From IMG/VR virus record IMGVR_UViG_3300047476_002078, positions 62,001 through 126,000 of that record: a stretch of 64,000 nucleotides of DNA; one strand, written 5' to 3'. The notes under the pieces were generated by a model. That model ran no database searches and had not been told where the DNA came from. It was given only the letters and a program-made list of their open reading frames with translations. A program made the position numbers and the translations under genes. Position 1 is the first letter of the stretch. Every line of letters starts with the position of its first letter. Of the stretch, positions 24,903 through 59,297 are shown piece by piece.

Positions 24903-27050
24903 ATGAAAATCGACAAGAAAACACTCTCTGTTTTACAGAAACTAGCAATTACTTATCAAGAGTATAAGAAATTGCATCCTCGTACTAAGAAGACACCCGA
25001 TGACCCTCTTTTTACTTTGGCACAAGACCCAAACAAAAAAGAGTTCAAGGTTAAGCCTAAAGATATTAAAACAGTCATGCCTTCCAAGACACCTACCAAG
25101 AGTGTTCCGCAAAAGACAGACGACCCTGTTGAAAAGTTTCGCCCAAAGCTGGCTCCAAGTGCTTATCAAAAGCAGATGGATTCAAAAGAGCTTTTGAAAA
25201 ACGCTAAGAAAATGTCTTCTGACGATATGGCATGGCATCTTCTTAATTCTAAGATTGGTATGGGTTTTGAGAGTGGGGAACTTCGAGATCAAATGAAGAG
25301 TCATTTTGGTATTGCCAATATGTATGCCATGATGATTTTAAATCCAAATATATCAAAAGAAAGCCGAGACAATATTGCTTCATGGTTGCTCGATAAAGCC
25401 GGAGTATATTTTGTTTCCAGTAAATCTCTTAAAAGATTTCTCGAAGGTTGTGCGAATAAAGGCATTATCTCAAAAGAGATTTGGGAAGAAGAAGCCAATG
25501 GGGATAGTCAGCGTAAGGAAGAGGATGAGATTGCTCAAAATTACACCGCTGACCAACTTAAAAAACTTCCTGCTAAAAAGATTCAAGAGAATTGGAATGA
25601 GATTTGTCAAAACGAAAATCTTCCGACTTCCATGATTCAAAAGATGTTGGGTGATAAGGATGTGAAGAAAGCCCTTGAGTTCATGAAAAAGGGCTACATA
25701 GAAGATACAGGAGCCATGTCTGGTAAGATTGGTGAGCGTAAAAATAAAATTGGTAAAGCGTTAAAAATTCTTTCTCATAAAAATGTTCCTTTTGAAGCGT
25801 TACAAGAAGTGTTTGTACCTTCTCTTAAAAAACATCTTTCAACAAATAACTACAAGGCTTACGAAGTCGCTGAATACCTTGCGAGTCATCCTGACATAAA
25901 CAAGCCAGAGAACAGTGAGCTAAAAAAGTTAGTGCTTCAGGCTTATAAGACTCAGCTTAAATACTACAAAGACGACCCAGAATATGTGGAAGACCCTTAC
26001 AAGTCTCAACGTAACTTTGATGAGCTAAAGCACCCTTCCGCTCCCCCTGCTAACTTAAAGCTGTCGAAGGAAGAGTTCTTAGCAATTTGGAAGATTAGAG
26101 ATGAAGGTCCATATAAGTCTCAAAATGAAAGATGGTTTGAGCATCCTGATATGCCAGATGAGATTATCAAAGAGAGTTTGACTAAAAAAGATAATAAAGT
26201 AAAAGACCCTCTTGATAAATATCTTAGTGACTATTCGGAAGTTCGGAAACTCGCTTTTCATCAAGCTCGAAAAAGAAATCTCTTATCAGATGACGACTTA
26301 ATCAAAACTGTAAAAGCTAATTTGAATCTGCATGGCAATGACAATGAACTTATGAAAAAGTTCGCTGAACAAGCTTACACTTATGGAAAAAGCACTAATG
26401 ATATACCTCGTTATATTTCTAAGGGAAGTGATGAGGAACGCAAAGCTGTAGAAGAACAGATGAAAAAGTCAGCTTTCCATGAAGAGTTTGATTTTGAAGT
26501 CTCCGCAGTTTACAACATTGATAAAGAGCCACACAAAGATTTCGCAAAAACTTCTAAGAAACTTGGAAATGTAATGGAAGGTGTTTACCATGGTACAAGC
26601 TATGCAAACGCCGCTGGGATTCTTTCAGATGGGGTTAGAGTTGATACCGAAGAAAGAACAGGTTCTATGTTCGGTAGGGGTTTTTATCTAGCTTCTGCTT
26701 CTTCTAAAGCTGCCCAATATGCTGGAGAAAAATTTAGTCAGCATGATGGAGATGGGGTAGTCTTTATGCTGAATGTCGCTCTTGGTAAATCCAAAGAAAT
26801 GAAATATGGCAGACCCGAAGGAGATAATCTAAAATATCGTATGTTGAGTCCGGAAGAAAAACAAATGATTGAGGATTACAAAAAGAAAACAGGCAAAGAC
26901 CTTGATGATAAGTGGCACTACGACCATGACTCTGTAACTGCTAAGGCAGGGCAGGCTTTAGATTATGATGAGTTTGTGGTGAAAGACCCTTCTCAGCTTC
27001 AGATTAAAAAGATTGTTATTGTGAAGAAGACACCAAAGGCAAAAGTATGA
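24903..27050 (+). CDS. large protein with C-terminal PARP-type (H-Y-E) ADP-ribosyltransferase domain, leader-bearing
   Basis: YHGT...GSMFGRGFYLA...SKAAQY...VALGK...HDSV...YDEFVV parallels the PARP1 catalytic motifs. N-terminal leader plus YQEYKKLHP module. Confidence 0.85.
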   Translation: MKIDKKTLSVLQKLAITYQEYKKLHPRTKKTPDDPLFTLAQDPNKKEFKVKPKDIKTVMPSKTPTKSVPQKTDDPVEKFRPKLAPSAYQKQMDSKELLKNAKKMSSDDMAWHLLNSKIGMGFESGELRDQMKSHFGIANMYAMMILNPNISKESRDNIASWLLDKAGVYFVSSKSLKRFLEGCANKGIISKEIWEEEANGDSQRKEEDEIAQNYTADQLKKLPAKKIQENWNEICQNENLPTSMIQKMLGDKDVKKALEFMKKGYIEDTGAMSGKIGERKNKIGKALKILSHKNVPFEALQEVFVPSLKKHLSTNNYKAYEVAEYLASHPDINKPENSELKKLVLQAYKTQLKYYKDDPEYVEDPYKSQRNFDELKHPSAPPANLKLSKEEFLAIWKIRDEGPYKSQNERWFEHPDMPDEIIKESLTKKDNKVKDPLDKYLSDYSEVRKLAFHQARKRNLLSDDDLIKTVKANLNLHGNDNELMKKFAEQAYTYGKSTNDIPRYISKGSDEERKAVEEQMKKSAFHEEFDFEVSAVYNIDKEPHKDFAKTSKKLGNVMEGVYHGTSYANAAGILSDGVRVDTEERTGSMFGRGFYLASASSKAAQYAGEKFSQHDGDGVVFMLNVALGKSKEMKYGRPEGDNLKYRMLSPEEKQMIEDYKKKTGKDLDDKWHYDHDSVTAKAGQALDYDEFVVKDPSQLQIKKIVIVKKTPKAKV

Positions 27051-27268
27051 ACCAAGCCGAAATAGATCGCCAAACTATTGAATTTATTGTCAATCAGACA
27101 CCCTCTGAAGAAGAGGCGAGGCAACGTCTGGATAAGTTACAAGTTTCTTTGAAAAAAGATTATTACGAATTCTTAGTGGAAGAAGCGATTAAGAATAAAT
27201 TCCTTATAATTAATAAAACTAAGGAAATTCAAGCGAAGATATTAAATTTAGAATCAAAGTTAAAATAG
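27047..27268 (+). CDS. small hypothetical protein coupled to the PARP gene
   Basis: ATGA overlap with the PARP stop codon. Confidence 0.6.
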   Translation: MNQAEIDRQTIEFIVNQTPSEEEARQRLDKLQVSLKKDYYEFLVEEAIKNKFLIINKTKEIQAKILNLESKLK

Positions 27269-27275
27269 GGATTGT

Positions 27276-27905
27276 ATGAAAAAAATAGTTTCAAGCCTTC
27301 ATAAAATTGCGTCAGATTTAGAAAAAACTGCTTTAGATTACAATGAGTATAAAAAGCTACACCCGAACACAAAAAAGACACCTTCTGACCCGATGTTTAA
27401 AGAAAATAAACCTCAACAGGAGAGTCAGGCTCCCAAACAACAAGCTCCAAATCAACAACCAAAATCTGAGCCTAAACAAGAATCTGCTCCTAAAGTAAAG
27501 AAAACTGTTAGTGATTTTACGGATGCTGAATTAGATGAAATTGGTTTCATGCCGTCTTATAGAAAAAGTTTAAGTGATAAAGAAGTTTTGGAAGAATATA
27601 ACGCTAAAAATAAAGTTGATGAGCTTGTAAAATCTAAAAAATTGAACCTTTCTGATTATCCTGATACTGCCTTTACCTCTATTCTGCAAGATTACAAAGA
27701 AAAACAAAATAAAGGAAAATTAAGTGATGATGATTTTGAACCAGAAAACTTTTATACCGCAGTTAGAAAACATTTAAGCGATAAAGAAGTTACTCCTAAA
27801 ACTGTGAGGGAAGCGATTCGTGTTTATCACCCAGATGCAAAACTCACAAATGACCAAATAAGTTCTGTAATGAATATGTATGAAAAAAAACAAGGTTGGG
27901 GCTAA
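27276..27905 (+). CDS. hypothetical protein, leader plus YNEYKKLHP module, Gln/Pro/Lys linker
   Basis: MKKIVSSLHKIASDLEKTA-LDYNEYKKLHPNTKKTPSDPMF. Confidence 0.75.
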   Translation: MKKIVSSLHKIASDLEKTALDYNEYKKLHPNTKKTPSDPMFKENKPQQESQAPKQQAPNQQPKSEPKQESAPKVKKTVSDFTDAELDEIGFMPSYRKSLSDKEVLEEYNAKNKVDELVKSKKLNLSDYPDTAFTSILQDYKEKQNKGKLSDDDFEPENFYTAVRKHLSDKEVTPKTVREAIRVYHPDAKLTNDQISSVMNMYEKKQGWG

Positions 27906-27906
27906 T

Positions 27907-28299
27907 ATGAAATTAAAAGAACAGATACAAAATTTAGAGAAAAAAATCGCTTCTAAAGCGGATGCTGCTGATATTTTTGATGAGTTTGTTAAAAACATCA
28001 TGGAGCCTCATAGAAAGAAATTTATCGAAGATCAAAACTCACCTTGGAACAAAAGCAGAGAAACTGAAGCTTCTTTAAAAGAAAAAGCAAAGTTGATTGA
28101 AGAAAGAATGAAAGAAGGTAGAGGTTTCCGTGAGGTTTGTGATGATAAAGATATTTATTTAGGAAGCGTTGATTCTAACTTCATTTATGATAAATATGTT
28201 CTAAAATCTTGGAAAGGCTCTTTTGAAGATTGGAAAGATAAAGAGATGCGTTTAGACGCTAGAAGATTTTTTGTAGATTTAAAATTAATTAAGTGGTGA
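27907..28299 (+). CDS. hypothetical protein, leader-bearing family
   Basis: MKLKEQIQNLEKKIASKA. Confidence 0.65.
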   Translation: MKLKEQIQNLEKKIASKADAADIFDEFVKNIMEPHRKKFIEDQNSPWNKSRETEASLKEKAKLIEERMKEGRGFREVCDDKDIYLGSVDSNFIYDKYVLKSWKGSFEDWKDKEMRLDARRFFVDLKLIKW

Positions 28300-28304
28300 T
28301 AGAT

Positions 28305-29411
28305 ATGAAAGATTTAATTCCGGGCGGAAAGTCAGATAAAAAACCAGACTCAGCTTTTGATTCCAAGCAACTTCAAAAAGGTATCAAGGTTGAGCGAGAG
28401 CACACAAAAAACAAACAGCTTGCTAAAGAGATTGCAAAAGATCATTTATCTGAATTTTCTGATTACTATGATAGATTAGAAAAGATGGAAAAGTCAGCAC
28501 ATTCAAAAGTTCTCTTAAAAAAAATAAAAGAGCTTGCACACAAAATTTCTGCTTCTAACGAGCATCCTATAACTAAAGGCTTAGTGCTGTCCTTTTTTGC
28601 TACTAACATCGAGATTGGTGTTATTGACGAAGCTACGAAAAAACCTATCACTATTGCGAAAATTAATAAATCGTTTAAGAAAGATAGTCAAAGTGAAGTT
28701 ATCGAACTAGCTAAAGAGATATTTAATAATCTCGATGCTTCTGGTTACACTAAAGGCATGGACTTCAAGGCTCAACCTTACTACCGAGAATTAAATCAGG
28801 CTTATCTTAATTTCAAGAAAAGATTGTCGGAACTTTCAGAGAACCAATTAGAAAAGATGGGACTCGGTAAGCATCCATATAAATATTTGGGAGCTATGGA
28901 GTCACCTTCAAAAGAACTTCAAGAGCAAAATCCAGAAGCCTATAACAACGCACTAAGAAATTTCCCAAGATTTGATGCAGGTGGAATTGGAAGCTGTGCT
29001 AGATGTTACAACGCAATTACTATTCACCATATTATTAAATCTAGTGATGGAAAGGTATTTCCTTTAGGTAGTGAGTGCGTTTGGACATTGAATGATAATA
29101 AAATCGAGTCTGAAGTTAAAAAAGAAAAGACAAAGATTGAGAAAAGTAAAAGAGACGTAAGAAATAAGGCAAAATTATCTGATCTGGAAGACATTATAAA
29201 CAATCCTGAGTTAATCAAGAAAATGAAAAGTATGTCATACAAAATGCCAGCCGCTTTCAGTAAATGGGATGAGGGCAAAAGGCAATGGTACTTAAATACA
29301 ATTGTTGGAGATGGGACTTACTACGATTATGTTTTACACATGATTAAAATTTCTGGCACTTCAGGAAAACAAAGAATACTAAAAGAAGTTAAAAAAGATT
29401 TGGGGTTATAA
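28305..29411 (+). CDS. DUF5661-like N-terminal domain protein with an internal leader-like segment
   Basis: KGIKVEREHT...AKEIAKDHLSE...YYDRLEKME, then KKIKELAHKISAS, and a CARC...GSEC zinc motif. Confidence 0.6.
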   Translation: MKDLIPGGKSDKKPDSAFDSKQLQKGIKVEREHTKNKQLAKEIAKDHLSEFSDYYDRLEKMEKSAHSKVLLKKIKELAHKISASNEHPITKGLVLSFFATNIEIGVIDEATKKPITIAKINKSFKKDSQSEVIELAKEIFNNLDASGYTKGMDFKAQPYYRELNQAYLNFKKRLSELSENQLEKMGLGKHPYKYLGAMESPSKELQEQNPEAYNNALRNFPRFDAGGIGSCARCYNAITIHHIIKSSDGKVFPLGSECVWTLNDNKIESEVKKEKTKIEKSKRDVRNKAKLSDLEDIINNPELIKKMKSMSYKMPAAFSKWDEGKRQWYLNTIVGDGTYYDYVLHMIKISGTSGKQRILKEVKKDLGL

Positions 29412-29412
29412 T

Positions 29413-29715
29413 ATGAGCATTGTTAAAAAATTAAATAAAGTTGCAGAGTTTCTTGAAAAATCATCCGCAAGTGAGTTCGACAAATGGCTCGATACTTTCC
29501 TTGAAGAGAAAGGCATTGACCTTGAAGATGATTTCACAGTTCAAGGTGCTTTTTATGGTGATAACTACATGACTTATGAAGTTGTTGTAGAGCACATTAA
29601 AATCGCTCCGAAGCACGAACAAAAGAAAATTAAAGACATGCTCGTAAAAATTGATTTTAAGAATGGGGATGTGAAACATTTTCTCCGTCATTTAGGACAG
29701 GCTTTAGCAAAATGA
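29413..29715 (+). CDS. hypothetical protein, leader-bearing family
   Basis: MSIVKKLNKVAEFLEKSSA. Confidence 0.7.
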   Translation: MSIVKKLNKVAEFLEKSSASEFDKWLDTFLEEKGIDLEDDFTVQGAFYGDNYMTYEVVVEHIKIAPKHEQKKIKDMLVKIDFKNGDVKHFLRHLGQALAK

Positions 29716-29903
29716 AAAATATTCTTTCTAAACTTAATGAATTAGCTACAAAAATAGAGAAAACATCTTCAAAACGTATTCCTGTTTATCTGAGTCAAGA
29801 AGAGTTGAAACTTATTAAGCAAGGGCTTGATAAAGTTCAAGGGTCAGGAGTCTTAAAACTTATCGAAAGAGTCGAAGCAGAGTTAGACACTTTCGAGGAA
29901 TAG
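29712..29903 (+). CDS. hypothetical protein, leader-bearing family
   Basis: MKNILSKLNELATKIEKTSS. Confidence 0.65.
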   Translation: MKNILSKLNELATKIEKTSSKRIPVYLSQEELKLIKQGLDKVQGSGVLKLIERVEAELDTFEE

Positions 29904-29922
29904 CTCACCGCAAAAATTGATA

Positions 29923-29951
29923 TTGACTAAGTGTGTTCAATAGCATATTAT
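29923..29951 (+). promoter_or_regulatory. sigma70-like promoter
   Basis: TTGACT-N17-TATTAT upstream of ORF 29965. Confidence 0.6.
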
Positions 29952-31054
29952 CCGTAAAATTTTTATGGAGATTAGCTTGAGCAACTGTCCTTCCTGTAAA
30001 AAGCCCTACAATGGTTTTAAAGACGACGAGTCCATGGCTGAGTATAAACAGTCAGGTCTTTGTCAAAACTGCCAAGACGAGTTTTTTGGTGCTCCTACGC
30101 TACCAAAAGGAAATCCTACAGGTATATGCCGTGATTGCGGTAGGATGACATATCAAGAAGAAGAATTTTGTTCTCAGTCTTGCGAAACAGCTTACATGAA
30201 TTATTTAAACGAAGGTTTGAAATGAATTTACGAGAACTAGAAAGAAAACTTGGTCTTCCACTTCGTTACTTGGACAGCAAAGAAAATGTAGAACTTCCAG
30301 AAACTCAAGCATTATTAAAAATGATTGATGCTATGCCTTGGCTCATAGAGGTAGCAGAAAGTGGTTTTAATCCTGAAGTTTCCCAACTGATACTACAAAG
30401 AGAAGCAATCAACATAAAGATAGAGGAAGCTAGGAATGGCAAATAAAGCAGAATTTAGAGTGATGTATCAAAAATCCGTCGGCTTTTGCGGTGAGGCTAG
30501 AATGGAGTGTGTAAAAAGTTTCCTAACTTTTGAAGAAGCCTCTAAATTTGCCAAAGACTATGAGTTACCTAATCACATGGACGAAATATACATAATGCAA
30601 ATTTACACAAAGGATAAAAATAATGAGGACGATGGCAAATGTTCTACTGGAAAAGAGTCTTAACGCTCTTTTGAAAAAACTTACTCCTCAAGACTTAGCT
30701 AAATATGAGGCTTGGAAGTTAGACCAATCTCACGATCTTGAATTGGATGATAAAATGCTTGAGCTTGAAATAGATAACCATGTCGTAGCAATTGAAGAAG
30801 TTAAAGAAATGGAAAAAGATACAGACCAGTATTATCAACTTCAAGCACATATCAAAAAAATACAGAAATTAGCTAATCTTTGGGACACCTAATCAACAAG
30901 GCTCGGATGAGGAAAACCGAGCCTAAAAAACCTACTCCCATACCTATTCTTGGGAAACCGCTCATAACTGCTTGAATGTTTAATAAACTTAGGGAACAGC
31001 CTATTAAAGTAAAATGAATCTTTTTATCTAGTTTTGGGCACATAACTCATTATA

Positions 31055-31071
31055 GTGGAATCGGTATAGCC
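31055..31071 (+). promoter_or_regulatory. conserved 17-bp phage upstream element (copy 2)
   Basis: GTGGAATCGGTATAGCC upstream of ATG 31095. Confidence 0.75.
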
Positions 31072-31094
31072 TATGTAACAAATAGGAGGATTCC

Positions 31095-31541
31095 ATGAGC
31101 ATTAATATTGGCGACATTGTAGAACTCAACGGAAAAGAATATAAAATTGTCGGAACGATCAAGCGTTCCTACCTTCTTGAAAGGGAAGGTAAGCAATATA
31201 AAGCGACTGCCGATAAAATCAAAAAGATTCAACAAATCACAGGTCAAAGAGAAAGCACTCCCACGACTTCTTACCTAGAAAGAAGAGTGGCTTACTTGAA
31301 AATTTTCAAAATAGACGCAAAAATACCGACCAATGCAGAAGAGTGTATGCCTTTCTTTGAAAGATTAGTTGGTGAACTATCTCCAGAAAATCTATCTTGT
31401 GACGGAGAGGCTTCACGCTCACAAGTTCAGGCGAAGCTCAGAGAAATCAGAGGAACTTGGAAAGAACTTGAAACGATTGCAGGACGAAGATATTCAGAAC
31501 AAGAAATTGAAGAACGTATGATGGGAGGACTCAATGGATAA
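31095..31541 (+). CDS. hypothetical phage protein
   Basis: Strong GGAGG RBS. Contains LSPENLSCDGE. Confidence 0.65.
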   Translation: MSINIGDIVELNGKEYKIVGTIKRSYLLEREGKQYKATADKIKKIQQITGQRESTPTTSYLERRVAYLKIFKIDAKIPTNAEECMPFFERLVGELSPENLSCDGEASRSQVQAKLREIRGTWKELETIAGRRYSEQEIEERMMGGLNG

Positions 31542-33376: not shown

Positions 33377-33410
33377 AAATTCCAATTATTCTGTGTTAAA
33401 TTTTAAAAGT

Positions 33411-34232
33411 CTATTTAAAATTTAATTGAACCTGTGAATCTGTCCCATCTTCATGAGCAAAAGTAAAATAATGCTGTTGATGCCATTTTGATTTGATTGC
33501 ATTTGACAGTCTCATTTTAACTTTCCCTGCTTCATCAAAATCAGTAAAAATGTTTTTAAGATGGCTTCCTGCTACGTGCCCTGTGCCCTTCATCTCATCT
33601 CCTGCATATTGTTCCCAGAGAGGCTTTAAATGATTATGCCCTGCGGTAGAGTGGATAACGGAATGTTGTCCATATTTTTTACCAATTGCTTCCAAGTCTT
33701 TTGGAGAAACTTTATTTGTGTGGTGAACCATGAAAACATTTTCATCATTCCCCATGAAGTGCCCTGTACCTCTGTGAAAAACAACGCCCATTTTCTGAAG
33801 TTCTTGCATGAGTTGTTGTGTACGTTTTTTATTTTCTTCGGAATCTGTTTTTTGACCATGTGGGTTTTCTGCGGTTAGTACCGTAAATGAACCGTGGTTT
33901 AAATGATGCTTGAGAAATTTTTTATCTATTGGGGCTGCTCCGGAAATAAAAGGTCGTGCGTTTTCGGAAGTCTTTACTTGCGTTCTTGTTCTCAATTCTT
34001 TGAACTTATCAAAGTCTAATTTTGTATCGGGATGATTCTGCTTAAACATATCGTAAGCAGTATTAATGCTCTCGTCTGATTTAGTCTGTGGTTTATTTTG
34101 AGAAGGTTGAGCAAAAAGAGGGTCATTTGGTCTTTTTTTAGTCAAAGGGTGTAACTTCTTATAGTCTTCATAAGTTATTTTGGCTTTTTTAAGCTTATTT
34201 TCAAGTTCAGAGATTAAGTCAGATACTTTCAT
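33411..34232 (-). CDS. leader plus YEDYKKLHP module protein with a DUF3293-like C-terminal domain
   Basis: MKVSDLISELENKLKKAK-ITYEDYKKLHPLTKKRPNDPLF, and FTVLTAENP...EENKKRTQQL...GTGHF...ENVFMV. Confidence 0.65.
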   Translation of the reverse strand: MKVSDLISELENKLKKAKITYEDYKKLHPLTKKRPNDPLFAQPSQNKPQTKSDESINTAYDMFKQNHPDTKLDFDKFKELRTRTQVKTSENARPFISGAAPIDKKFLKHHLNHGSFTVLTAENPHGQKTDSEENKKRTQQLMQELQKMGVVFHRGTGHFMGNDENVFMVHHTNKVSPKDLEAIGKKYGQHSVIHSTAGHNHLKPLWEQYAGDEMKGTGHVAGSHLKNIFTDFDEAGKVKMRLSNAIKSKWHQQHYFTFAHEDGTDSQVQLNFK

Positions 34233-46722: not shown

Positions 46723-47763
46723 ATGGCACATACAAATTACACAATACCTACGAGTGTTTGGAGCATTAGTTCTGGAAATTTAGTGAACTCTACTTTATTT
46801 TCTTTTAACACTCCATGTTATATAATTAATCCTACTACATTGAACAATTTAGGACTTACATACAACTCAAGTTTATCGGAAGCTCAATTTCAAAATTTGA
46901 AATCAACTTTGTCTTCACCTGTAAGTTTTGAGGCATCTGACTACTTAATTTCAAACTGGATAAGTTGTGGTTGGGGTTCAAACGCTAGTGAAGTTTTAGC
47001 TAATTATAACTCTTTCGTTAATAACCATTTAGAGCTTGGTGGAAGTTTAAGAGAGCAATTAAATAAAGCCTCTATACCTTTGACAAGTGTTGTAACTTTA
47101 GGCGAGCTTTCTAGCTCAAATTATTTCCTACCTATTTTAGTTTTTTCAAACCAAACAGACGCAGACCCTTTGGCAGGAAATTCTGAGCAAAATGAAAACG
47201 GTTCTATGGTAGCCGTTCAAAGCATTAACATATCTACTCCATTTGAAAGCAATATTATGTTTTCACATGATAACCCTGTGGAAAATGCAGGCTCATACAA
47301 GTATGAAGTTTATAGATCACTTTTAGGGAACCATTCATTAGAAAGAAGCTTTACAGTGAGCGGTTATTTTGATGAACCTATTTCAAACACTGTAAATGTT
47401 TATGGAGGAGGGGATTACTTTATTAAAGTTTATCCACTAACTCTGCCCGACACTTTAGGACCATCAACAACTTCTAATACAGTCTATGTAGATTCAAGTC
47501 TTCCTCAAAAACCTACAATATTTTCTGCGATTTGGGAGGGAACAGGCATTTCTTTGAACTGGTCTTCAGCTTTTTATCCAGACATAACAGCTTTTAACAT
47601 ATACAGAGACAATGTTTTAATCGCTACAATTAATGAGCCTGCCTTTGACACAACATATTTGGATACTACTGCCGAGGAATTTGGTTCTTATTATTATGAA
47701 GTAGAGGCTTCTGTAAATTTTGCCGTAGAAAAGAGTGATCTTTTCTATTATCCAACATTATGA
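46723..47763 (+). CDS. putative virion structural protein with fibronectin-III-like C-terminal domains
   Basis: N-terminus homologous to ORF 4229. C-terminus ISLNWS...AFNIYRDNVLIA...TYLDTT...YYYEVEA is FN3-like. Confidence 0.6.
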   Translation: MAHTNYTIPTSVWSISSGNLVNSTLFSFNTPCYIINPTTLNNLGLTYNSSLSEAQFQNLKSTLSSPVSFEASDYLISNWISCGWGSNASEVLANYNSFVNNHLELGGSLREQLNKASIPLTSVVTLGELSSSNYFLPILVFSNQTDADPLAGNSEQNENGSMVAVQSINISTPFESNIMFSHDNPVENAGSYKYEVYRSLLGNHSLERSFTVSGYFDEPISNTVNVYGGGDYFIKVYPLTLPDTLGPSTTSNTVYVDSSLPQKPTIFSAIWEGTGISLNWSSAFYPDITAFNIYRDNVLIATINEPAFDTTYLDTTAEEFGSYYYEVEASVNFAVEKSDLFYYPTL

Positions 47764-48185
47764 AAATAACAAATAAACTAATTAAAATTTCAAACTACTT
47801 AGATAAAATTGCCAAGTCAGGTTCAGTTTCACTGAATTATGAGTTTGATTACGATGATTTCAACTTAGATAAACTTGAAGAACTTCTTAAAAAATCTGGA
47901 ATTAGATTATCAGAAATAGCTGAATTGGATAGCGAAGGGAACATTGAGGAACTAAAGAAAATTTTTTGGGATGCTTTGGATTCTTTTGAAATTGAAGCGG
48001 AATGTTCTTTTTATAAATCTAGTGATTCTGAAGGTTATCCAGAACCAAACGAAACAGAGATTGAAACTACTTATCCAAAGCTAAAAATTTTAGGAAAATC
48101 AATTGATATTGAGTCTGTCATAATTAAAAGAACCAAAGAAAAAATTGAAGATAAGCTTTTTGAAAAGTTTATGGATGAATACTAA
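47760..48185 (+). CDS. acidic hypothetical protein, leader-bearing family
   Basis: MKITNKLIKISNYLDKIAKS. Confidence 0.7.
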   Translation: MKITNKLIKISNYLDKIAKSGSVSLNYEFDYDDFNLDKLEELLKKSGIRLSEIAELDSEGNIEELKKIFWDALDSFEIEAECSFYKSSDSEGYPEPNETEIETTYPKLKILGKSIDIESVIIKRTKEKIEDKLFEKFMDEY

Positions 48186-49060: not shown

Positions 49061-49432
49061 ATGAAAAAGATAGCATCAAAACTAATTGAAATCGCAGACC
49101 GGTTAAAGTTTGCGTATGAATCCAAAAAAGATCAAGAGAATTATTTAAAGCCCGACGAAGCTAAAAAACTCGAAGACTTCTTCAAGTCAGAACAACATAA
49201 AGTTGAAAACTTAGTTACTCCAGATGTAGGAACTTCAGTTCTAGGTAACGGTATTTCTGTTTATGTAATCCCATCACCTCGTCATAAAAAACCTGAAAAA
49301 AGATATGTTTTCAGAAATCCTTGGACTCAAGCGGAACAGCCAAGAGCTATCGAAGAAATGATTAGCAGGGCGGAGAGAAAATTTCCAGAATTTAAAGGTC
49401 GTATTCAGTATGAATGGGGAAGGATGGATTAA
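49061..49432 (+). CDS. hypothetical protein, leader-bearing family
   Basis: MKKIASKLIEIADRLKFA. Confidence 0.7.
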   Translation: MKKIASKLIEIADRLKFAYESKKDQENYLKPDEAKKLEDFFKSEQHKVENLVTPDVGTSVLGNGISVYVIPSPRHKKPEKRYVFRNPWTQAEQPRAIEEMISRAERKFPEFKGRIQYEWGRMD

Positions 49433-49433: not shown

Positions 49434-49931
49434 ATGAGTACCGTTAAAAATCTTTTGAAAGTTGCTTCTTTTTTAGAAAAAATCGCAGAAAAAAAGAATA
49501 TATACTTAGTTTCTTCAGAAGGTAATTTTTCTTATGAAAGAGTTGTAGGTATTTCAACTCCAGACATGGAAAAAACTGATAGCGTTGATGGAGATGTTAG
49601 ATATGAGCTTGAAAAAGCTATTCAAGACGATTTGAGAGGTTTTCCTCTTCACAAGTACGTGGCGAATGATACAAATCTACCTATTACTAAAATTCAATTA
49701 AAAGAAGTGAATAACGATGGAGTTGCTGTATATGAACTTCATTGTGAAAAAGACTTGTCTAAAGAAGAAATGGAAAAATTAAAAAGTGCTTTTTCTGGAC
49801 AACTATCGGATGGTTGGGGAGAAGGGTTCGAGCAGAATGAATTCTATGTTAAAGATACTGCCAGAAGCACGACTACTTACTACTATAGCCCGTGGACTCG
49901 AAACGGAAAAATAACAATTAAAAAAGCTTAA
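49434..49931 (+). CDS. hypothetical protein, leader-bearing family
   Basis: MSTVKNLLKVASFLEKIA. C-terminal GQLSDGWGEGFEQ motif. Confidence 0.7.
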   Translation: MSTVKNLLKVASFLEKIAEKKNIYLVSSEGNFSYERVVGISTPDMEKTDSVDGDVRYELEKAIQDDLRGFPLHKYVANDTNLPITKIQLKEVNNDGVAVYELHCEKDLSKEEMEKLKSAFSGQLSDGWGEGFEQNEFYVKDTARSTTTYYYSPWTRNGKITIKKA

Positions 49932-49935: not shown

Positions 49936-50388
49936 ATGAAAAAAGTATTATCAGAAATTGCTAATTTAGAATCTAAACTATCCTCTGAAAAAAAAGCCAA
50001 ATATAATCCAGACGGTGCTTGGTATTATTATGGTTTCGGTGGAGGTGGTCTTGAGCATCCCATTTATCATGATGAGGGTCGGTACATAGATGTTCACAAA
50101 TACATCAATACTCCATCTACAACAAAAGGGTTGGTTGAGATCAGTCAATTTGAGCAAGCTATTAAAAAACTTTTAAGTAATATCAATTCAGCTTCTTCTA
50201 AAAATGCAAATTATGTAAACCTTGGATGGAGAGTCGATAAAGAAGTCCTTGATGCTTTACTTAATCCTGTTTTTTTAGACACTAATGACCAATTCAAAGA
50301 CTATGAGCGTTGGGAGAAAAAGTGGAAAGAAGAGAACAATACTACTAGCAATCCTACACAAGAACAAATAATTAAAAACTACAGGTAA
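49936..50388 (+). CDS. hypothetical protein, leader-bearing family
   Basis: MKKVLSEIANLESKLSSEKKA. Confidence 0.7.
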   Translation: MKKVLSEIANLESKLSSEKKAKYNPDGAWYYYGFGGGGLEHPIYHDEGRYIDVHKYINTPSTTKGLVEISQFEQAIKKLLSNINSASSKNANYVNLGWRVDKEVLDALLNPVFLDTNDQFKDYERWEKKWKEENNTTSNPTQEQIIKNYR

Positions 50389-50394: not shown

Positions 50395-50691
50395 ATGAAC
50401 ATCAAAGAAGAAATTAAAAAACTTGAAGACAAAATAAGCTCAGAAAAGAAAGCCTCAGACTCTACTCTTCAACAAGTAGCGGAGGCAGTTAAAGGTCACA
50501 ATTTAATGTCTATGAGAAAACCTTTAGAAACCATATTCAAGAAAAAAGACATTGATTTTTCGTTTGAGCCGATTCCAGCTTTCCATATCAAACATAAAGG
50601 AAAAACAATTCTCATTGTAAATAAAAATAATGTTGAAGAAGTAGATTCTTCGGATGTGGTCGTAGGAAATGTTGTAATTGGCTATCTTTAA
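50395..50691 (+). CDS. hypothetical protein, leader-bearing family
   Basis: MNIKEEIKKLEDKISSEKKA. Confidence 0.7.
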   Translation: MNIKEEIKKLEDKISSEKKASDSTLQQVAEAVKGHNLMSMRKPLETIFKKKDIDFSFEPIPAFHIKHKGKTILIVNKNNVEEVDSSDVVVGNVVIGYL

Positions 50692-51274: not shown

Positions 51275-53474
51275 TTTATGTACGGGAATCTCGGTGATGC
51301 GATAAAAAATTTAGTGGTATTTTTAGTAGTGTCTTTAGTTATAACATTTCCACTGGCTCTTTGGAAATTATACGACATCTTTATCTGGTTTAAGAATCAT
51401 ATTCATTTTGGAGTTTATCCATGATTGAAATGAGCAAGGAAGATTTGGTTAGTGAATTAATCAAACAAAAAAATTTAATAGAAAGGATGAAGAAAGATTA
51501 TCACGAAGACATGGAGAGAAAAAATAAAGAAATAAACTTTTTAAAATCTGAATGTAAAAGAGTTTATGACCCAATCAGGGAATTTTGGAACATGGAAAAA
51601 AATGAAGAAGCCGAACAAATGAAGAAAAAATTAACTGCTATTGAAAGTGAACTTCGCCACATATATGACTACTCAGTAGGAGAATCCGAAGTTCAAGCAG
51701 GTATTAGTAATATCCTATCAGATCACTTTAAAAAGGCGTGAAATATGACAGCAAATGAATTTAAAGAACTATCTAATTGGCAAAAAATTAGAACCTTGTC
51801 TGGAGTTGTACCTCAGACAGGTAGCTTAGAAACAGATGTTAAAATATTAACTGACCGTTTAGCAATATGTTGTCTTATTTCAAGAGTTGAAGAAGGTGAT
51901 GCAACAGAAGAATTTTTAAACGAAATCATAGATAAAGCCTTTGGAGTATAATGTGAAAATTGCAGAAGCTATGACTTCTAACAAACCTTTTAAAAGACCA
52001 GAAAGTGATGAAATAGTTCAATGGTTTTTAGGAGGAACAGGACCTTTTTCAGACTTAGTACAGTGTGATTATTTTACCGTAAATGGAGAATTTACAACTG
52101 ACTTATCGTTATATGCTTCAGATATTTTAGCAACAGATTGGCAAATAATAGGCACGACCGAAGCGAACGAGGCTGAAGAAGAGTAGCTAGGTGGAAGCGA
52201 GATGACTGTGTTGACCCGAACGGTATGCGAGCCTTGAAATAATCGGGTCCCGCCTCTTCAAAGGAAAAATTATGAGTGAAGAAAAGTTTAGAAGGTATTT
52301 AGAACTCAATTACAATATTGAAAAAATTAAACACGAAAATACTTTTGAATGGGCTGTAAATGCTTTGGAAGATATGGACATACAATTAGGTATGGAATCT
52401 CATAGAATAAGCAGACTTGAAGAGTTTTGTAAGGAGTTTGTTTACGGTGAAGAAAATCCCCAATATTACAAAACAATGACAGAAAAAGTTGAAAGCTTAG
52501 AACATAAATTGAAAAAGGCACTCGAAGTTATTAAATTTTATGCAGAACATCATAACTGGGATTTTAGCTGTACTATTTGGGATGGTGATTGGGAGCCATT
52601 AAATTCTAATGCTCTTACAAAAAATCTTCTCGTAGGGGGCAAAAAAGCTAGAGACTTTTTAAAAGAAGAAAACAAATGAGTATCGCTTTATTAATTGTGT
52701 TTCTATTCGGTATGTTAATTTACTGTTTCTCTGTGGCTTCAAAAATAGAAGAGGATTATGTGCCATTTAAAGAGTCTTACACTCTAGGAGAATTTTTAAT
52801 ATCAATTTTAACTTTTCCTTATTACATATTTCATAAAATTTCTTTTATATCGCTTAAATCAGTTTTTTCATTTTTAGAATTTATATTCAACTTAGAAATA
52901 AGAAAAAGAAAATGATCGAAAATAATAATCAACTACAGGTAGCCTATAATAAAATAAAGTCATTGGAGAAATCTCTTGATGAGATGAAGGTTGAATCAGT
53001 GTTTGATAAAACTTCTCAAATGCAAATAAAATCTCTGATTGATGAAATAAAATCAGAAATTAAAGAGTATTTAAAAAAAGGATAAAATGATTTATTTTTT
53101 TATTTGGATGTTTGTAGGCTCTTTTGCCATGAACTTAGCATGGATAGAAGAACATCAAAAAACTCTCAATGATTTTGATTACTGGAAAGAATCAAAATAT
53201 CGAAAACATGAGTATGTGAAAAGTTTAATACTTGGATTAATTTTAGGACCCCTTATGTTAAAAGGTCTTTTCAGTGAAAAAAAGTGAAGCTGTCATAGCA
53301 TTAAGCGAAAAATTACAAAAAAGTAAAAATTTATTCGACGGTTATAAAAAAGGAAGTATTACTTTAAAATGCCTCTGTGACAATTTAGCTGATAGAGCTT
53401 TGAATTTTTCAACTGATAAAATTTACAAGGTTCCTCCCGATGGAAAATGGGAAGATGAATATCTCGAAGAATAA

Positions 53475-53502
53475 TTGACTTTAAATACTCTTAATTTATA
53501 CT
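53475..53502 (+). promoter_or_regulatory. sigma70-like promoter
   Basis: TTGACT-N16-TATACT. TTGACTTTAAATA also occurs at 34293. Confidence 0.55.
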
Positions 53503-54530
53503 TGTTATTGAAATGAATGATATACAAAACATCATAGATACATTTTTGTTAAAAAATCCGAGGAAAAGGTTTCCAGACAAGAGTTGGAAAATGTGTAATC
53601 CTGAAAAGTTTAAAGCTTCTGTTGAACTTTATAAAATGGGATATTGTATCGCAGACATAGCCAAACATGTTGGATGTACCTATGATACTTTAAGAAAAAC
53701 TTTCGCAAGAGAAAAAATTTATAAACCTTCGCAATATAGACAAAAACACAGAATTTTAAAATGAACGAAAATACAGAAATAGATGAAGAACAGTGTTTAT
53801 CTGATTGGAAAAGCCATAACTTATCCTGTGACGAATCTATTAGAATCCACGACTACTGCGAAAGAGCTTTTCGACACGCTTGGAAATTAAAACAAGGTGA
53901 GGTGGATTTGTATAAAAACAAATTAAAAAATACCCAATCATATTCATGCCAATTAAACAACATAGCTCAAGATTTGTTGTTGGAAATATCAAAACAACTA
54001 ATAGAGTTTAGCCACATTGGAAAAATTGAATACATAAGAAAAGAGATTAAGAGAGCGTTAGAGGAGTTGGAGAATGAGTATGATTATGAACAACAATTCT
54101 ATGACAGCACAAAAAAAGTCGGTTGGTAAAGCAGACAACATTTTAGTTACAAAAGAGTTTTTAGATAAAAGAGCTTCATACTCCATCAATAAGGGATACG
54201 GTAAACAAAAGTGGATAATTTTTTGTGAGGCTTTACTTCTTGAAGGTTATTCAATAAGGCTTTATGAAGCCAAAAATACTTTTTCTAAATACGTTACGGT
54301 TATTAAAGATAAAAAACAGTTCAAAGTAAGATTTAGTAACCATAAACCGATATATCAAAGAGAAATAAAAAAAGACTGCGACTTTTTTGTAGGGGTAACT
54401 CATACAGGAGTTAGAACGACAGAAGATGCTTTAATTAAAATCAAAAATTATTTCAAAGGGTTACATTAATTATAAATAAATTTTATTTTCGTAATTAACG
54501 TACACTAAATATTTCATGTACATAAAACAA

Positions 54531-54547
54531 GTGGATTCGGTAAAGCC
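54531..54547 (+). promoter_or_regulatory. conserved 17-bp element, variant (copy 5)
   Basis: GTGGATTCGGTAAAGCC, 16 nt before ATG 54564 (GGAG RBS). Confidence 0.6.
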
Positions 54548-56649
54548 TATACAGGAGAATTTTATGAATTTCATTTGGGTACAATATGGAAGCGAACAGT
54601 GGAAAAGAATGACAAATGTTGTTTATTTAGACTACATGGGGAATAAGGTTCCTTATGGTTGGATTACGTGGGAAACGGAAGTAATGCAAGACGGAACTAA
54701 GATGGCAAAAATGGTTTGGACTCGGTTTTAATTTTGCCAAACACTATTCCGAAATGTAGCATTTATTCATGGAAAAACTAAGACTATTTGCTAAAAAAGA
54801 TATTAAGGTCGTTGAAAGTTTCATCAAAGCAGGACAAGAAGTAAGGATAGGAAAAATATCCCAATCGCAATCAAAGTTCATGCTCATTTGTGCAGAAGAT
54901 AATTTGCATAAATGGTGTGAAATGTCTGAGTATGAAGAATTAGTGGAGGATAGAATTATTTATGACGAACACAAATATTGATACTTTTCAGTCAACGAGA
55001 GTTTTTCTCACTCCTAGCGGTGAGTATGTTTTGGCTTTACCTATTTTTGCCGATGAGAAAGGCTCTATATTTAATAAATCAGACATGGAGAAAATGACTG
55101 GTGTTTCTGTTTCAGTCGGGTTTTATGACCATATAGGATACATCATTTATCACCCAGAATTCGGAGAGCATTTAATGAACAGAGAAGTGACAGATTCGTT
55201 CTTTGAAGACTTAGGTTCATTAAATGAATAAGGTTTTAGATATTCTAAAAGGTTTTTCATTTTGGCAAAAAACTAACATTAAAGAAAGTCGAGTCCTTAT
55301 TGCTTTCCACCATCCAAGAAGCATTACTTGGCTTTTTACAGTTTGGGTCGGCAGAGAAAGATTTGGTTCAAAATTTAAGTTAGCCTGCCATAATGGGAAT
55401 TTTTTAATTGTGTTGTTTGGATATTATTTATCTTTGGACACTCAAAAACAAATGTGGAGAGAATATGAATAACCTTCGGTATATCATTAGAAATGGAGAA
55501 AAAGTTCTTCAATTTTCTGAAACAGTTCCGGAGTATGGCAGAACTGAAGATAACCAATTAGTAGTCATAGGCATGAATACTAATTGGCAGGATGTCCCTC
55601 TATGCGAAGATGAAAACCAAATTTTCAATACTAAAATAAGTGTGGATGCTAAATACAAAGAAGCTTTATCCATTTTAAAAGACATGGTTGATGATGAATG
55701 GGGAACTGACTATTGTGACGGCTTTACAATGAGAGCTAAAGAGTTTTTAGAAAAATTTGAAGAGGGGTAAAGACCTCTCTTTTTATTTTAAAAGAGTCAT
55801 AAAATCCATATTATCCATTAGAGTAGCGTATGGGCTAAAATTATCAAAAACTGCTCCCATATAACTTGTCATTCCATAACCATTTTTATGACATTTATAA
55901 ACACTTCCGCTGTAACCATGAAAAAGATAATACTCGCCTTCTTCTTCCACTTTAGTCACACCGCTATTTAATTTCCACGATTGACCTCCGAGATAACTCC
56001 CTGCCCAACCAGCAAAAACTTTATAAACTTCTTCTTTATCATTTTTTAGTTTTAACATTACCCAACGATCAGGAATATAAGTGCTCATAAAAACCTCTTT
56101 TAACATTATAGACTGTTTGCCATAATGAATATTTTATTTTACGGTAAAATAAAGTAAGAGGTCAAATGAAATACGCTAAAGATTATGCAGAAGATTGTTA
56201 TGAGCATATTAAAAATTTTGATTTGCAGTCGAAGGAAATAATAGTTAGTGCTATAGAATTAGCTATTTTGAGAAGACTAGAAGATTACAAGAATAAAGTT
56301 TATTTTCCTCTGTTGGAAGAAAACAAGCTTTTAAAAAATTTAGTACATATTGCAGGAGAAGATTTAAAAGCTGGGGAAATTGTTACACTATCAGACAATA
56401 AAGTTTATAAAGGAATAAAATGAAAGATTTGCTTTTACAAGCACCAGATTCTCAAATTGACGCTCAATTAAAAAATCTAATAGGTAAATGGAGTGAACCT
56501 CCTAAGTCTATCGAAGTTTTAGAGTCTCTCGATCATTGTGTTAGGTACTCTTCAGGTAGTGATTTTGTTGTTTCTGTTTTGAGAGCAATTCTTGAACAAT
56601 CTATGAAAGTAGAAAATACAGATTATGATACAGTAGTGTCACAAGCCAC

Positions 56650-56973
56650 TTGGAGAAATATTTAATGGAATGGATAATGCTTGCACATTTTATAGGAGAT
56701 TTTGTCGCACAAACTGACTGGCAGGCAAAGAATAAAAGCAAAAGCAACAAAGCTCTTTTGTCACACACTTCAATATACACTTTGTTTTTAATTCCCTTCG
56801 GTTTAAAATACGCCATAGTAAATGGTTTAGCCCATACAGTAATTGATTTTTTTACTTCCAGAGAATCCTCAAAAAGATGGTCTAATGGAGAAGTACACAA
56901 TTTCTTTGTTGTGATAGGTTTTGACCAATATCTTCATTTTCTAACTTTATATTTAACTTGGAAACAGTTTTAA
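56650..56973 (+). CDS. DUF3307-like membrane protein
   Basis: LAHFIGDF..QTDWQA..K...L..H...GFDQYLH. Confidence 0.8.
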   Translation: MEKYLMEWIMLAHFIGDFVAQTDWQAKNKSKSNKALLSHTSIYTLFLIPFGLKYAIVNGLAHTVIDFFTSRESSKRWSNGEVHNFFVVIGFDQYLHFLTLYLTWKQF

Positions 56974-57303
56974 GGAGGTTGTAATGAAACTATCGGAAGT
57001 AATTAAAAAAGCCAGAGTTGGTGGATATTTCAGAAGACCTTGTTGGTCTGGAGAAAGCTGGCTAGTAGTTAAAGAAGATAATTCTATTAAATTTAGGTCA
57101 ACTGGAAATAAATGGACACCTAAGTTGGAAGACTTGGATGCAGATGACTATCAGTATCAAGTTCAAAATGAAATGTGGGAAATTTGGTGTGAAAATGAAA
57201 ATGGTGAAATTTGTATTCATCCAAAACTCATTACTGAAAATCAAAAAAGTGAATTTAATAACATTGTAATCAGTAAAAAGCATATCATCACAAGAGGCTT
57301 AAA

Positions 57304-57522
57304 TTGAGTCAAAATTTCGTGATACCCTTTGGTAAATATAAAAATTACGATTTACTTCATGTGGCTGAAAGTGAACCAAAATATTTAATTTGGCTTGATT
57401 CAGTAGCGGAAGGTAATTTGAAAGTTGCTTTAGAATCATTTTTAAATTCTAAGTATTTTAAAGACTGCTTGATTGAACATGAGTACGAAGATAACGAAGA
57501 AGATATGTGGGATTGGAATTAA
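57304..57522 (+). CDS. small DUF3820-like protein
   Basis: IPFGKYKN...P.YL.W motif. Confidence 0.5.
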   Translation: MSQNFVIPFGKYKNYDLLHVAESEPKYLIWLDSVAEGNLKVALESFLNSKYFKDCLIEHEYEDNEEDMWDWN

Positions 57523-57707
57523 TGGAAATTAAAAAATGCCCTGAATGTGGAAATGATTCTGGAGACGTAGAATTTGAGGATAGAATAAGCCATTTTGCTT
57601 TTGTTGAATGTTTGACTTGCAGACACAGATCAGACTCTATTGAAGGTCGAACAAAAGAGGAAGCGATAGAAAAAGCTATAGACCTTTGGAATAAAGAGAG
57701 GAAATAA
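57507..57707 (+). CDS. Lar-like restriction-alleviation zinc-finger protein
   Basis: KKCPECG...FVECLTC...EEAIEKAIDLWN. Confidence 0.6.
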   Translation: MGLELMEIKKCPECGNDSGDVEFEDRISHFAFVECLTCRHRSDSIEGRTKEEAIEKAIDLWNKERK

Positions 57708-58679
57708 TGAAACCTTTTGAAATAAAAGTTGTAACAGACGGTGGTCTTTGGGTTGAACATAATTACCCTTGCCCTATTTATTCAAATTTAAACAGTGTTT
57801 ATGATATGGATAAAGGCATTTTTAAGCCATCTTGGGTTGCTCAAAAAAGAGGCTGGAATATCGTGTGTGCTGACACTTGGTTTAAGAGAATGATTTTGAG
57901 ATACTTATTTAAAACAGATAATGTTCCAAGTTCACTCTATAAAGAGCAACTTAAAAAGTTAAAAGATTGAAATTATTTAATTTTTCACGAATTTTTGAAT
58001 TTTTCATTCCAATGAAAAATGAAAACAAGTGCAAAATACACAAATGGAATTTTGAAACAGTATCTTGTGGGTATTGTTTGTTAGAAAAATTATTCGGAGA
58101 TGTAAAAATGCAAGATCAAGTCACAGGAACATTTTATCTTGTAAAAAATAAAAATATTGTTGGTGAAGCCGTTGTAATGAGTTTAACCAATGTTGTTTTT
58201 CATCTTTATTCAGATATAAGAAACACACAAAATACGACTTACGAACAAATAACTAAAAAGTATAAACTTGAAAGAGTCATTGGGAATTCTTTCTTAAAAG
58301 GAAAACAGTGATTCAATATTTTAAAGAAGGTTCAAAAGTATATTTCAAAGAAGGGCAGTATCAAGGACTCATAGGTGAAGTCTTAGGAGATGATTGTGTT
58401 TTGCTTACAGTAAAAGTAAAACTGACAGATGATAAAATTGTAGAGGTTCAAAATTTAGTTCTTCAAAAAGCTCCTGAAATAAAGAAAGAATATTTATGAA
58501 AATAAAGCAATCCGAAGTTATACAAAAACTTGCTAAACTATTCGATTCTATACCAGAAGAAGCGAGCAGTTATCATGTATGTGACATGCTTATGTATAAA
58601 GCAGAAAAAATGGGACTACTTATTAAAGAGGAACATGATGAGGAGTATTATTACATATTACAAACTGTAATAAAAACAG

Positions 58680-59297
58680 ATGAAAAAAATATTTAAAGCA
58701 ATATCAAAATTAGAGAAGAAAATTTCTGGTCTTTCTTATCAAGAGTATAAGAAAAAATATCCAAAGACTAAGAAACAGCAAAATGACCTTCTATTTACTG
58801 AACCTTCTAAACTTGTTCGTAATCCAAACACTGACGGTTTAAAAGAATTGATTACTCAAGACTACGCAGACAGATTGGATAAAAAACCTATTAAGGAAAA
58901 AATACAACCCACAATAAATCCAATTTTTAAAAATGTTGATGTGGAAGAAGAACACGATGAAATTTACCGTGCTGCCAGTGAACTTGGGGTTAATGGAGAA
59001 GAATTAAAAAGCAAAATTAAGTCTGCAAAACCTCAACGCCTATCTAATGAAATTTGGAGTCAATTACAGAACACAGATAGTTGGGAAATTTCAAGTAAAG
59101 AAGACGTTGATAAACTTTCCAAAAAATATAACAGAGACGCTGATAGTATTAGAGACGCTTTTAAAAATGGTAAAGCCTTGCCTACTCCCATGATTGCTAA
59201 AAAAGGCAATGAATATGTTTTAATCGGTGGGAACACTCGATTAATGGTATCTAAAGAAATGGGAATAAAGCCTTTTGTTGTAATAGCCGAAGTCTAA
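58680..59297 (+). CDS. leader plus YQEYKKKYP module protein with a ParB/Srx-like C-terminal domain
   Basis: MKKIFKAISKLEKKISG-LSYQEYKKKYPKTKKQQNDLLF, and PTPMI...YVLIGGNTRL. Confidence 0.7.
   Translation: MKKIFKAISKLEKKISGLSYQEYKKKYPKTKKQQNDLLFTEPSKLVRNPNTDGLKELITQDYADRLDKKPIKEKIQPTINPIFKNVDVEEEHDEIYRAASELGVNGEELKSKIKSAKPQRLSNEIWSQLQNTDSWEISSKEDVDKLSKKYNRDADSIRDAFKNGKALPTPMIAKKGNEYVLIGGNTRLMVSKEMGIKPFVVIAEV

Follow-up and report, generated by a model that had tools for sequence, protein, structure and literature searches.

A conserved 23-residue peptide at the N-termini of unrelated proteins in uncultured freshwater huge phages: a candidate capsid-targeting tag

What is the role of a short, almost unchanging peptide that stands near the N-terminus of otherwise unrelated phage proteins? 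The question is raised by a 64,000-nucleotide stretch of DNA (hereafter the window) that comprises bases 62001–126000 of IMGVR_UViG_3300047476_002078, a phage contig of 355,874 bp on which it was placed by a back-translated pattern search. The window has a G+C content of 33%; together with other loci of the contig, about 86 of its 356 kb were examined. In four genes of the window, an amphipathic leader is followed directly by a 22-residue module, the two together forming what we call the tag, and then by a different cargo. A preliminary description regarded the module as a portable docking or DNA-binding element that becomes the new N-terminus when the leader is cleaved. We find that the module is a real peptide family, not recorded in any of the databases and papers searched. 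By analogy with the capsid targeting sequence of phage T4, we give about an even chance to the reading that it is a capsid-targeting or docking tag that loads enzymes into the phage particle.

The four module peptides proved to be exact translations of the DNA as first quoted. They are located at 24948–25013 (plus strand, residues 16–37 of a 715-aa PARP-type ADP-ribosyltransferase), 27333–27398 (plus strand, residues 20–41 of a 209-aa protein), 34113–34178 (minus strand, residues 19–40 of a 273-aa DUF3293 protein) and 58731–58796 (plus strand, residues 18–39 of a 205-aa protein). Against the module profile they score 47.4, 50.2, 45.1 and 36.3 bits, respectively, the last copy being the most divergent, and eleven columns are invariant among them. 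A six-frame scan of the window with a profile made from 96 outside relatives found exactly these four copies, at 36–50 bits, the next stretch reaching 6.4 bits (E about 1), and a regular-expression scan of the window returned the same copies and no others. The gap between 36–50 bits and the 6.4 bits of the runner-up led us to reject a chance or low-complexity artefact. A stretch of the DUF3293 protein (residues 59–80; 34068–33990, minus strand) that reads Y-D-M-F-K-Q-N-H-P-D-T-K-L... and is kept in the ortholog P0001 was considered as a degenerate second copy and rejected at an E of about 2 against the profile.

The relatives come from an exhaustive HMMER search, in which an eight-sequence profile was compared with 1.84 billion cluster representatives at E <= 1e-3. 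This search yielded 96 clusters with varied cargo, 22 of them at E <= 1e-10, whose tagged representatives range from 48 to 706 aa; a search by indexed words, with the first 45 residues as query, brought up a single ortholog. The consensus of the 96 clusters spans 23 residues, A-[IV]-[TD]-[YF]-x-E-Y-K-K-x-H-P-x-T-K-K-T-P-S-D-P-M-F, and begins three residues upstream of the 22-residue module, at an alanine in 60 of the 96. When residues are counted from the first Tyr/Phe of the module, Tyr4 is present in 95 clusters, His8 in 93, Pro9, Thr/Ser11 and Lys13 in all 96, Asp17 in 94 and Phe20 in 91. A double-glycine leader of the bacteriocin type was considered and rejected, as alanine stands three positions before the first Tyr/Phe in those 60 clusters and is followed by [IV]-[TDS]; glycine is found there only in a minority of clusters, and some of the cargo is about 700 aa long.

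Selection acts on the module peptide and not on its DNA. Among eight module copies, nucleotide identity is 68% and amino-acid identity 66%, while 209 of 406 codon pairs for the same residue (51%) use different codons; upstream of the start codons, 80 bases are unrelated among the tagged genes. A DNA repeat, gene conversion or a promoter cassette was rejected on the basis of these three observations. The PARP paralogs are 82% identical within the module and 36% overall.

The module is also portable, as originally claimed. BLASTP comparison of the four window proteins after the module gave no mutual similarity (all E > 0.3), which speaks against full-length paralogs. At least three further tagged genes, encoding a 663-aa PARP paralog, a 127-aa protein and a 128-aa protein, are found on the contig outside the window. 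The later parts of these seven proteins are unrelated except in the two PARP genes, the only paralogs among them, and full-length paralogy was rejected for that reason. Nor is the module a named domain: searches of Pfam, NCBIfam, PHROGs and PDB sequences and a Foldseek search of the PDB gave no match beyond chance to a family or structure that covers it, and the module motif strings were not found in the searched literature. A resemblance to the 'HPD' motif of J-domains was rejected. The tag profile aligns at chance level (E 1.3–3.8) with residues 499–523 (A-T-Y-Q-E-L-K-K-N-Q-P-N-A-K) of PDB 9mkb chain ja, the T4 tape measure protein gp29, and the 127-aa tagged protein matches Pfam T4_Tape_measure at E 0.043; both are probably coincidence.

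In the window proteins, the leader that precedes the module is amphipathic and 15–19 residues long, with the rough consensus M-K-K-I-L-A-E-I-x-x-L-E-K-K-L-A, and the module starts at residue 16–20; its first Tyr/Phe falls at residue 15–27 in 76 of the 96 clusters. The leader of the PARP protein (24903–24947, plus strand, residues 1–15) scores 14.7 bits against the leader profile and is modelled by AlphaFold2 as a helix at residues 5–14. Those of the 209-aa protein (27276–27332, plus strand), the DUF3293 protein (34232–34179, minus strand) and the 205-aa protein (58680–58730, plus strand) likewise lie directly before their modules. The preliminary description had a low-complexity Lys/Pro/Gln linker follow each module. 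It is clear in the PARP protein (25014–25163, plus strand, Lys/Pro-rich by sequence composition) and, directly after the module, in the 209-aa protein (27399–27503, plus strand, Gln/Pro/Lys), whereas the DUF3293 protein has only a short one and that of the 205-aa protein is hardly of low complexity. Across the 96 clusters, the 40 residues after the module contain 16% Lys, 8% Pro, 8% Ala and very few hydrophobic residues, a composition that makes a disordered linker probable.

The leader also occurs without the module. About nine further open reading frames (ORFs) of the window, all on the plus strand, begin with the pattern M-K-x-I-x-x-x-I-x-x-L-E-x-K-I-A/S and have no module (3039–3266, 10724–10966, 27907–28299, 29712–29903, 47760–48185, 49061–49432, 49434–49931, 49936–50388 and 50395–50691). 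Leader-only genes are also found in related loci, at L003 2457, L005 2368, L008 1262 and L021 9576, 18904, 19266 and 19722, and in L023. The leader family is thus much larger than the tagged one, and the module does mark a subclass of leader-bearing proteins, as had been proposed. A 372-aa protein with an N-terminal DUF5661 domain (28293–29411, plus strand; E 3e-11) has a leader-like internal stretch around residues 65–90 and could be either a fused leader-bearing unit or the product of an alternative start at 28485.

Conversely, the module occurs in other settings than behind the usual leader. Almost leaderless relatives exist (P0023, P0061, P0062 and P0084), and in six others (P0031, P0040, P0056, P0059, P0063 and P0076) the same module follows a second, strand-like leader, M-x-L-K-D-L-K-I-G-Q-S-x-V-V. 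Of the two modules in P0009, the second has no leader; the module of P0073 is internal and likewise leaderless; and P0049 and P0090 contain internal leader-plus-module units. Since internal, tandem and leaderless copies exist, the module seems to work on its own; judging from these architectures, it is an autonomous unit for which the N-terminal place is a strong preference and not a rule. The same copies, together with the strand-like leader, point away from an obligatory scheme in which leader cleavage exposes the module, and the start of the conserved block three residues further upstream also points away from cleavage exactly before it. A 66-aa protein from another assembly, P0005, is a natural in-frame deletion form of the PARP gene at 24903–27050, which lacks the whole enzyme: the leader, the module and some 17 residues of the linker run directly into the C-terminal 14 residues.

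A compact shape is predicted for the two parts. AlphaFold2 was run on the first 45 residues of a tagged protein, with a 70-sequence alignment, and gave a mean predicted local distance difference test score (pLDDT) of 82. In this model of the tag of the 209-aa protein, a leader helix (residues 2–18) is followed by a short helix formed by Y-x-E-Y-K-K-x (residues 22–28) and by an extended, proline-punctuated return loop, and the final Phe bridges back to the [IV] that stands two residues before the module's first Tyr/Phe. An eight-sequence alignment led to a similar fold. Leader and module are predicted on this basis to form a small closed knob on a stalk; in a search of PDB sequences, the leader resembles designed coiled-coil peptides.

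The module is confined to a lineage of uncultured freshwater huge phages, with contigs of 345–484 kb. Tagged proteins were also found on contigs of 345,241 and 483,791 bp; related loci have a G+C content of 45–49%, and all tag-bearing relatives span 33% to 49%. The tag was not found on other IMG/VR contigs, except on a 56-kb twin of the source contig, nor in representative genomes of 185,579 bacterial and archaeal species. Against 50,697 phage records, tblastn of the tag gave a single match at E = 0.4 (Citrobacter phage phiNP) and none better, tblastn with P0009 and P0049 gave no useful match, and megablast of the region against cultured phages found nothing close. For the structural genes, the best relative that turned up is Bacillus phage G. 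Shine-Dalgarno-like runs before the start codons, together with tail and baseplate genes of phage type, led us to reject an origin from a eukaryotic giant virus with a nuclear localisation signal. Near-identical DNA was found in freshwater, lake, wastewater and subsurface metagenomes, and lake metatranscriptome assemblies contain short fragments that include the tag region of the 209-aa gene, which indicates presence in RNA libraries and is not proof of transcription. In four lake or freshwater metatranscriptome libraries, short contigs are 95–100% identical to the PARP and 209-aa genes (window 24600–28400); those that cover the tag region (27264–27621) differ inside the module only by a synonymous C>T change at 27362. 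Because the tag is conserved across G+C contents from 33% to 49% and was not found in the cellular genomes, its partner is probably encoded by the phage.

The cargo behind the tag is varied. The PARP gene (24903–27050, plus strand) starts at the ATG at 24903, which is preceded by a GGGG Shine-Dalgarno-like run, and the same start Met is present in its ortholog P0010; the catalytic domain occupies residues 512–707 (26436–27023; Pfam PF00644, E 4e-23). The adjacent 209-aa ORF (27276–27905, plus strand) encodes a protein for which neither a family nor a structural relative was found in Pfam, NCBIfam or predicted-structure searches. The DUF3293 gene (33411–34232, minus strand) encodes the named domain at residues 119–192 (nucleotides 33878–33657; Pfam E 3e-12), its product also gives a weak, sub-threshold match to S-adenosylmethionine lyase in Pfam, and its ortholog P0001 retains the tag. 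These Pfam matches bear out the labels PARP and DUF3293-like that the two proteins had been given. The label 'ParB-like' for the 205-aa protein (58680–59297, plus strand) fared less well: Pfam gives no ParB family at E <= 0.1, and the predicted structure reaches template-modelling (TM) scores of 0.46–0.48 to ParB_N clusters and 0.75–0.77 to untyped phage clusters. The C-terminal domain (residues 84–205, nucleotides 58929–59294) is possibly ParB/Srx-like. Residues 49–134 of the same protein show a far sub-threshold resemblance to the N-terminal domain of BREX BrxL (Pfam E 0.048; NCBIfam E 8.6e-4, 18 bits against a cut-off of 329).

A Pfam scan of the 96 representatives, which gives per-family totals only, found PARP in four, LPD1 in three, topoisomerase IB and GNAT in two each, and DUF3293, DnaJ, ADPrib_exo_Tox and DUF6441 in one each; most tagged clusters have no Pfam family. 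A distant relative, L009, combines LPD1 with an H-E-x-x-H motif, and one representative weakly matches a 'minor head protein' PHROG. Individually examined tagged proteins have at most one recognisable cargo domain each. Judged from alignments, cargo homologs without the tag exist: the topoisomerase IB of cultured jumbo phages aligns with the tagged protein only from residue 85–118 onward, and the match of the tagged PARP protein to cultured phages is limited to the catalytic domain. DUF3293 is also found inside a 3,694-aa protein annotated as 'structural protein' in Flavobacterium phage elemoA. Proteins that are injected along with the DNA of phages or plasmids, T4 Alt being their prototype, draw on a pool of ADP-ribosyltransferase (ART), GNAT, metallopeptidase, ParB-like and LPD domains (Iyer et al. 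2017, PMC5512222). By their domains, the ART, GNAT and LPD1 cargoes, and DUF3293 through the elemoA protein, resemble known packaged or injected proteins.

A further recurrent element is a His-rich unit, G-K-T-x-S-G-K-P-I-Y...H-P-x-H...D-H-x-D-A...H, that often stands after the tag or the bare leader, at times in tandem. It is carried by the 127-aa tagged protein of the same contig (L003 2956–3339), by P0009, P0068, P0083, P0090, P0092 and P0094, and also at L023 9025 and 11396. Its sequence suggests that it may be a small metal-binding cargo, and the six P representatives may account for some of the unnamed Pfam and PHROG matches.

The explanation that we favour is that during particle assembly the leader and the module would bind a conserved, phage-encoded partner, which could be the scaffold or core, the inner face of the shell, or the portal. 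The cargo enzymes would thereby be enclosed in the prohead, possibly be trimmed by the prohead protease, and then exit with the DNA and act first in the new host, through activities that the cargo domains suggest (ADP-ribosylation, acetylation, anti-restriction and changes of DNA topology). Since only a subset of the leader-bearing proteins has the module, it would probably add a second contact, at a distinct position or with a distinct stoichiometry, and not be the sole signal. We infer the packaging, cleavage and ejection of the tagged proteins from the tag and the kinds of cargo. A more elaborate version, which we regard as quite doubtful, is a two-level code in which the leader alone would send dozens of proteins into the prohead and the knob would direct some enzymes on to another site, for instance the leading DNA end or the portal or ejection channel, from which they would enter the host first.

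Several observations weigh against capsid targeting. The likeness to the T4 capsid targeting sequence amounts to five residues, and tblastn finds nothing in cultured phages; most of the tagged genes in the window lie among accessory and not structural genes; and no promoter common to the tagged genes was seen upstream of them. We know of no precedent for topoisomerase IB or DnaJ as phage head cargo, and both could just as well be explained by recruitment to a site of replication.

The last point leads to the strongest alternative, namely that the tag acts inside the infected cell and docks enzymes on a phage-encoded hub, such as a replication factory, a sliding clamp, or a nucleus-like compartment or its importer, with no role in the virion. 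Besides the location of most tagged genes among non-structural ones, such recruitment is suggested by the topoisomerase IB, possible ParB-like and DnaJ cargoes, which act on DNA or chaperones, and by the D-P-[ML]-F end of the module, which loosely recalls hydrophobic clamp-binding peptides. Conservation across differing G+C contents suits any phage-encoded partner and hence this hub as well. However, a near-universal N-terminal place behind an amphipathic leader is a trait of packaging propeptides that hub motifs do not need, the module contains no glutamine-led clamp motif, and the ART, GNAT and LPD1 cargoes fall in the injected-protein pool (PMC5512222), and DUF3293 is part of a 'structural protein' of a cultured phage. 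We consider intracellular recruitment unlikely on balance.

The module might instead be the recognition and cleavage region of a prohead protease, to be removed with the leader and to have no later role. The conserved N-termini of internal proteins in T4, phiKZ and SPN3US are cleaved after Glu and expelled (PMC5694885, PMC8442874); in the present tag, Glu occupies module position 3 in 53 of the 96 clusters, and an L-E pair is frequent eight and seven residues upstream, in the leader. Yet no invariant position fits [LI]-x-E or [SAG]-x-E, the invariant residues belong to the segments further downstream, H-P-x-T-K-K and D-P-M-F, and leaderless modules occur in internal or tandem positions (P0009 and P0073), all of which makes a discarded propeptide distinctly unlikely.

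Binding to DNA, which the preliminary description had offered beside docking, would have the K-K...T-K-K-T-P stretch hold on to packaged AT-rich DNA, as SPKK or AT-hook motifs do, and tether the cargo to the genome. The five lysines and the T-K-K-T-P turn of the module, the Lys-rich linkers and the 33% G+C of the window are in line with such an anchor. Against it, the consensus carries a net charge of no more than about +2, conservation of the tag is just as strong in relatives with 45–49% G+C, and there is no AT-hook or SPKK core in the module. The invariant residues are not basic but aromatic, Pro, Asp and His; as a set, Tyr, His, Pro, Asp and Phe suggest a knob for protein docking rather than a purely basic motif for binding DNA, and we rate a DNA anchor as very improbable. 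Short linear motifs on disordered linkers commonly hijack host hubs, and a tag of this format with a predicted amphipathic leader helix might bind a host chaperone, protease adaptor or membrane and localise or regulate effectors once they are made or injected, but this seems to us the most far-fetched of the readings, as the tag was not found in the cellular genomes, which gives no sign of host-motif mimicry, and remains highly conserved in phages that appear, from their differing G+C contents, to have different hosts.

The surroundings of the tagged genes include further features. Tagged genes can be adjacent, as are the PARP and 209-aa genes in the window and genes for topoisomerase IB and a 445-aa protein in relatives, and in the 484-kb relative at least nine leader-bearing genes are clustered within about 11 kb. 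The tagged 128-aa gene and a leader-only gene lie directly downstream of an 851-aa gene and a 192-aa gene, on the same strand. The product of the 192-aa gene is 42% identical to gp190 of phage G, whose gene sits just downstream of a gene annotated as baseplate wedge subunit. This location and the clustering of leader-bearing genes count in favour of capsid targeting. PHROG annotation of the large neighbouring genes gave no useful result. Two paralogs of about 350 aa (4229–5299 and 46723–47763, plus strand) have N-termini like those of a protein of a relative (L021 15054–16226) that matches tail collar and tail fibre families (Pfam Collar; PHROG tail fibre families), and by this resemblance are probably tail fibre components, while their own products had no PHROG match. 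Three other paralogs (14747–15610, minus strand; 18820–19758 and 19755–20834, plus strand) have the N-terminus M-N-[VI]-L-S-L-F-D-G in common and, judged by eye, look like cytosine-5 DNA methyltransferases.

The genomes of huge phages contain hundreds of genes without a known role. If the tag marks proteins that travel with the DNA, metagenomic contigs could be turned into lists of candidate first-strike effectors and anti-defence enzymes, here ADP-ribosyltransferases, acetyltransferases, a possible S-adenosylmethionine lyase-like DUF3293 protein, topoisomerase IB, a J-domain protein and many domains without a family. The principle of capsid targeting, which is experimental in T4 and P1 and inferred for SPN3US, would then extend to an uncultured freshwater lineage. 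N-terminal packaging tags as such are already known; the signal described here is longer, two-part and much more conserved than the earlier ones, and if it is such a tag, it would offer a new cargo-loading handle by which foreign proteins could be loaded into such particles. Were the two-level code to hold, the whole injected effector set of these uncultured phages would be readable from sequence alone. Even without a partner in the capsid, a 23-residue peptide that is almost unchanged on 96 unrelated clusters would point to a central hub in these phages.

Several known systems invite comparison. In the encapsulation peptides of bacterial microcompartments and the cargo-loading peptides of encapsulins, a short amphipathic helix or peptide on a poorly conserved linker loads diverse enzymes into a protein shell. 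The parallel is one of analogy only: there is no sequence relation, and the peptides of encapsulins mostly sit at the C-terminus.

The T4 capsid targeting sequence, M-K-T-Y-Q-E-F-I-A-E, is cleaved off after loading (PMC8442874), and the internal proteins of T-even phages are diverse defence proteins that have only this sequence in common (PMC3012670). As in T4, the tag is a short conserved N-terminal peptide on unrelated, fast-evolving proteins that include an ADP-ribosyltransferase, and those of T4 are loaded into the prohead and injected (PMC3012670, PMC8442874, PMC5694885). The pentapeptides T-Y-Q-E-F of T4 and T-Y-Q-E-Y here provide a lead, with no homology beyond them. In contrast to the 10–20 residues of the T4 signal, the tag has about 40 residues in two parts, a coiled-coil leader and a 23-residue knob, with no invariant [LI]-x-E and with some copies internal or in tandem; packaging is established for T4, whereas the present tag is known from its sequence.

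In DarB of phage P1, the first 30 residues suffice for packaging: an N-terminal signal of more than nine and at most 30 residues takes this large anti-restriction enzyme, or a reporter in its place, into the phage head (PMC9024508). The present tag is common to 96 clusters, and tblastn of cultured phages with it gave no P1 match. Among giant phages, the ejection-protein paralogs of SPN3US have identical N-termini and have diverged in the rest (gp53 and gp54 are identical in their first 15 residues and 34% identical overall; PMC5694885). The propeptides of phiKZ and SPN3US thus recall the PARP paralogs described above, with their conserved module and diverged remainder. Those propeptides are mostly longer than 100 residues, specific to a paralog family and cleaved at [SAG]-x-E, whereas here one short tag (leader plus module, about 40 aa) is found on unrelated families and [SAG]-x-E is not conserved.

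Finally, the ART, GNAT and LPD1 cargoes, and more weakly a ParB-like one, fall in the pool of domains from which the polyvalent proteins of Iyer et al. (2017, PMC5512222) are built, and these are likewise predicted to be delivered with invading DNA. In the text of that study, no domain corresponding to the tag was found. Polyvalent proteins chain 2–15 domains in one polypeptide, whereas the tagged proteins mostly have single cargo domains, each with its own tag, and would represent a distributed version of the same arrangement.

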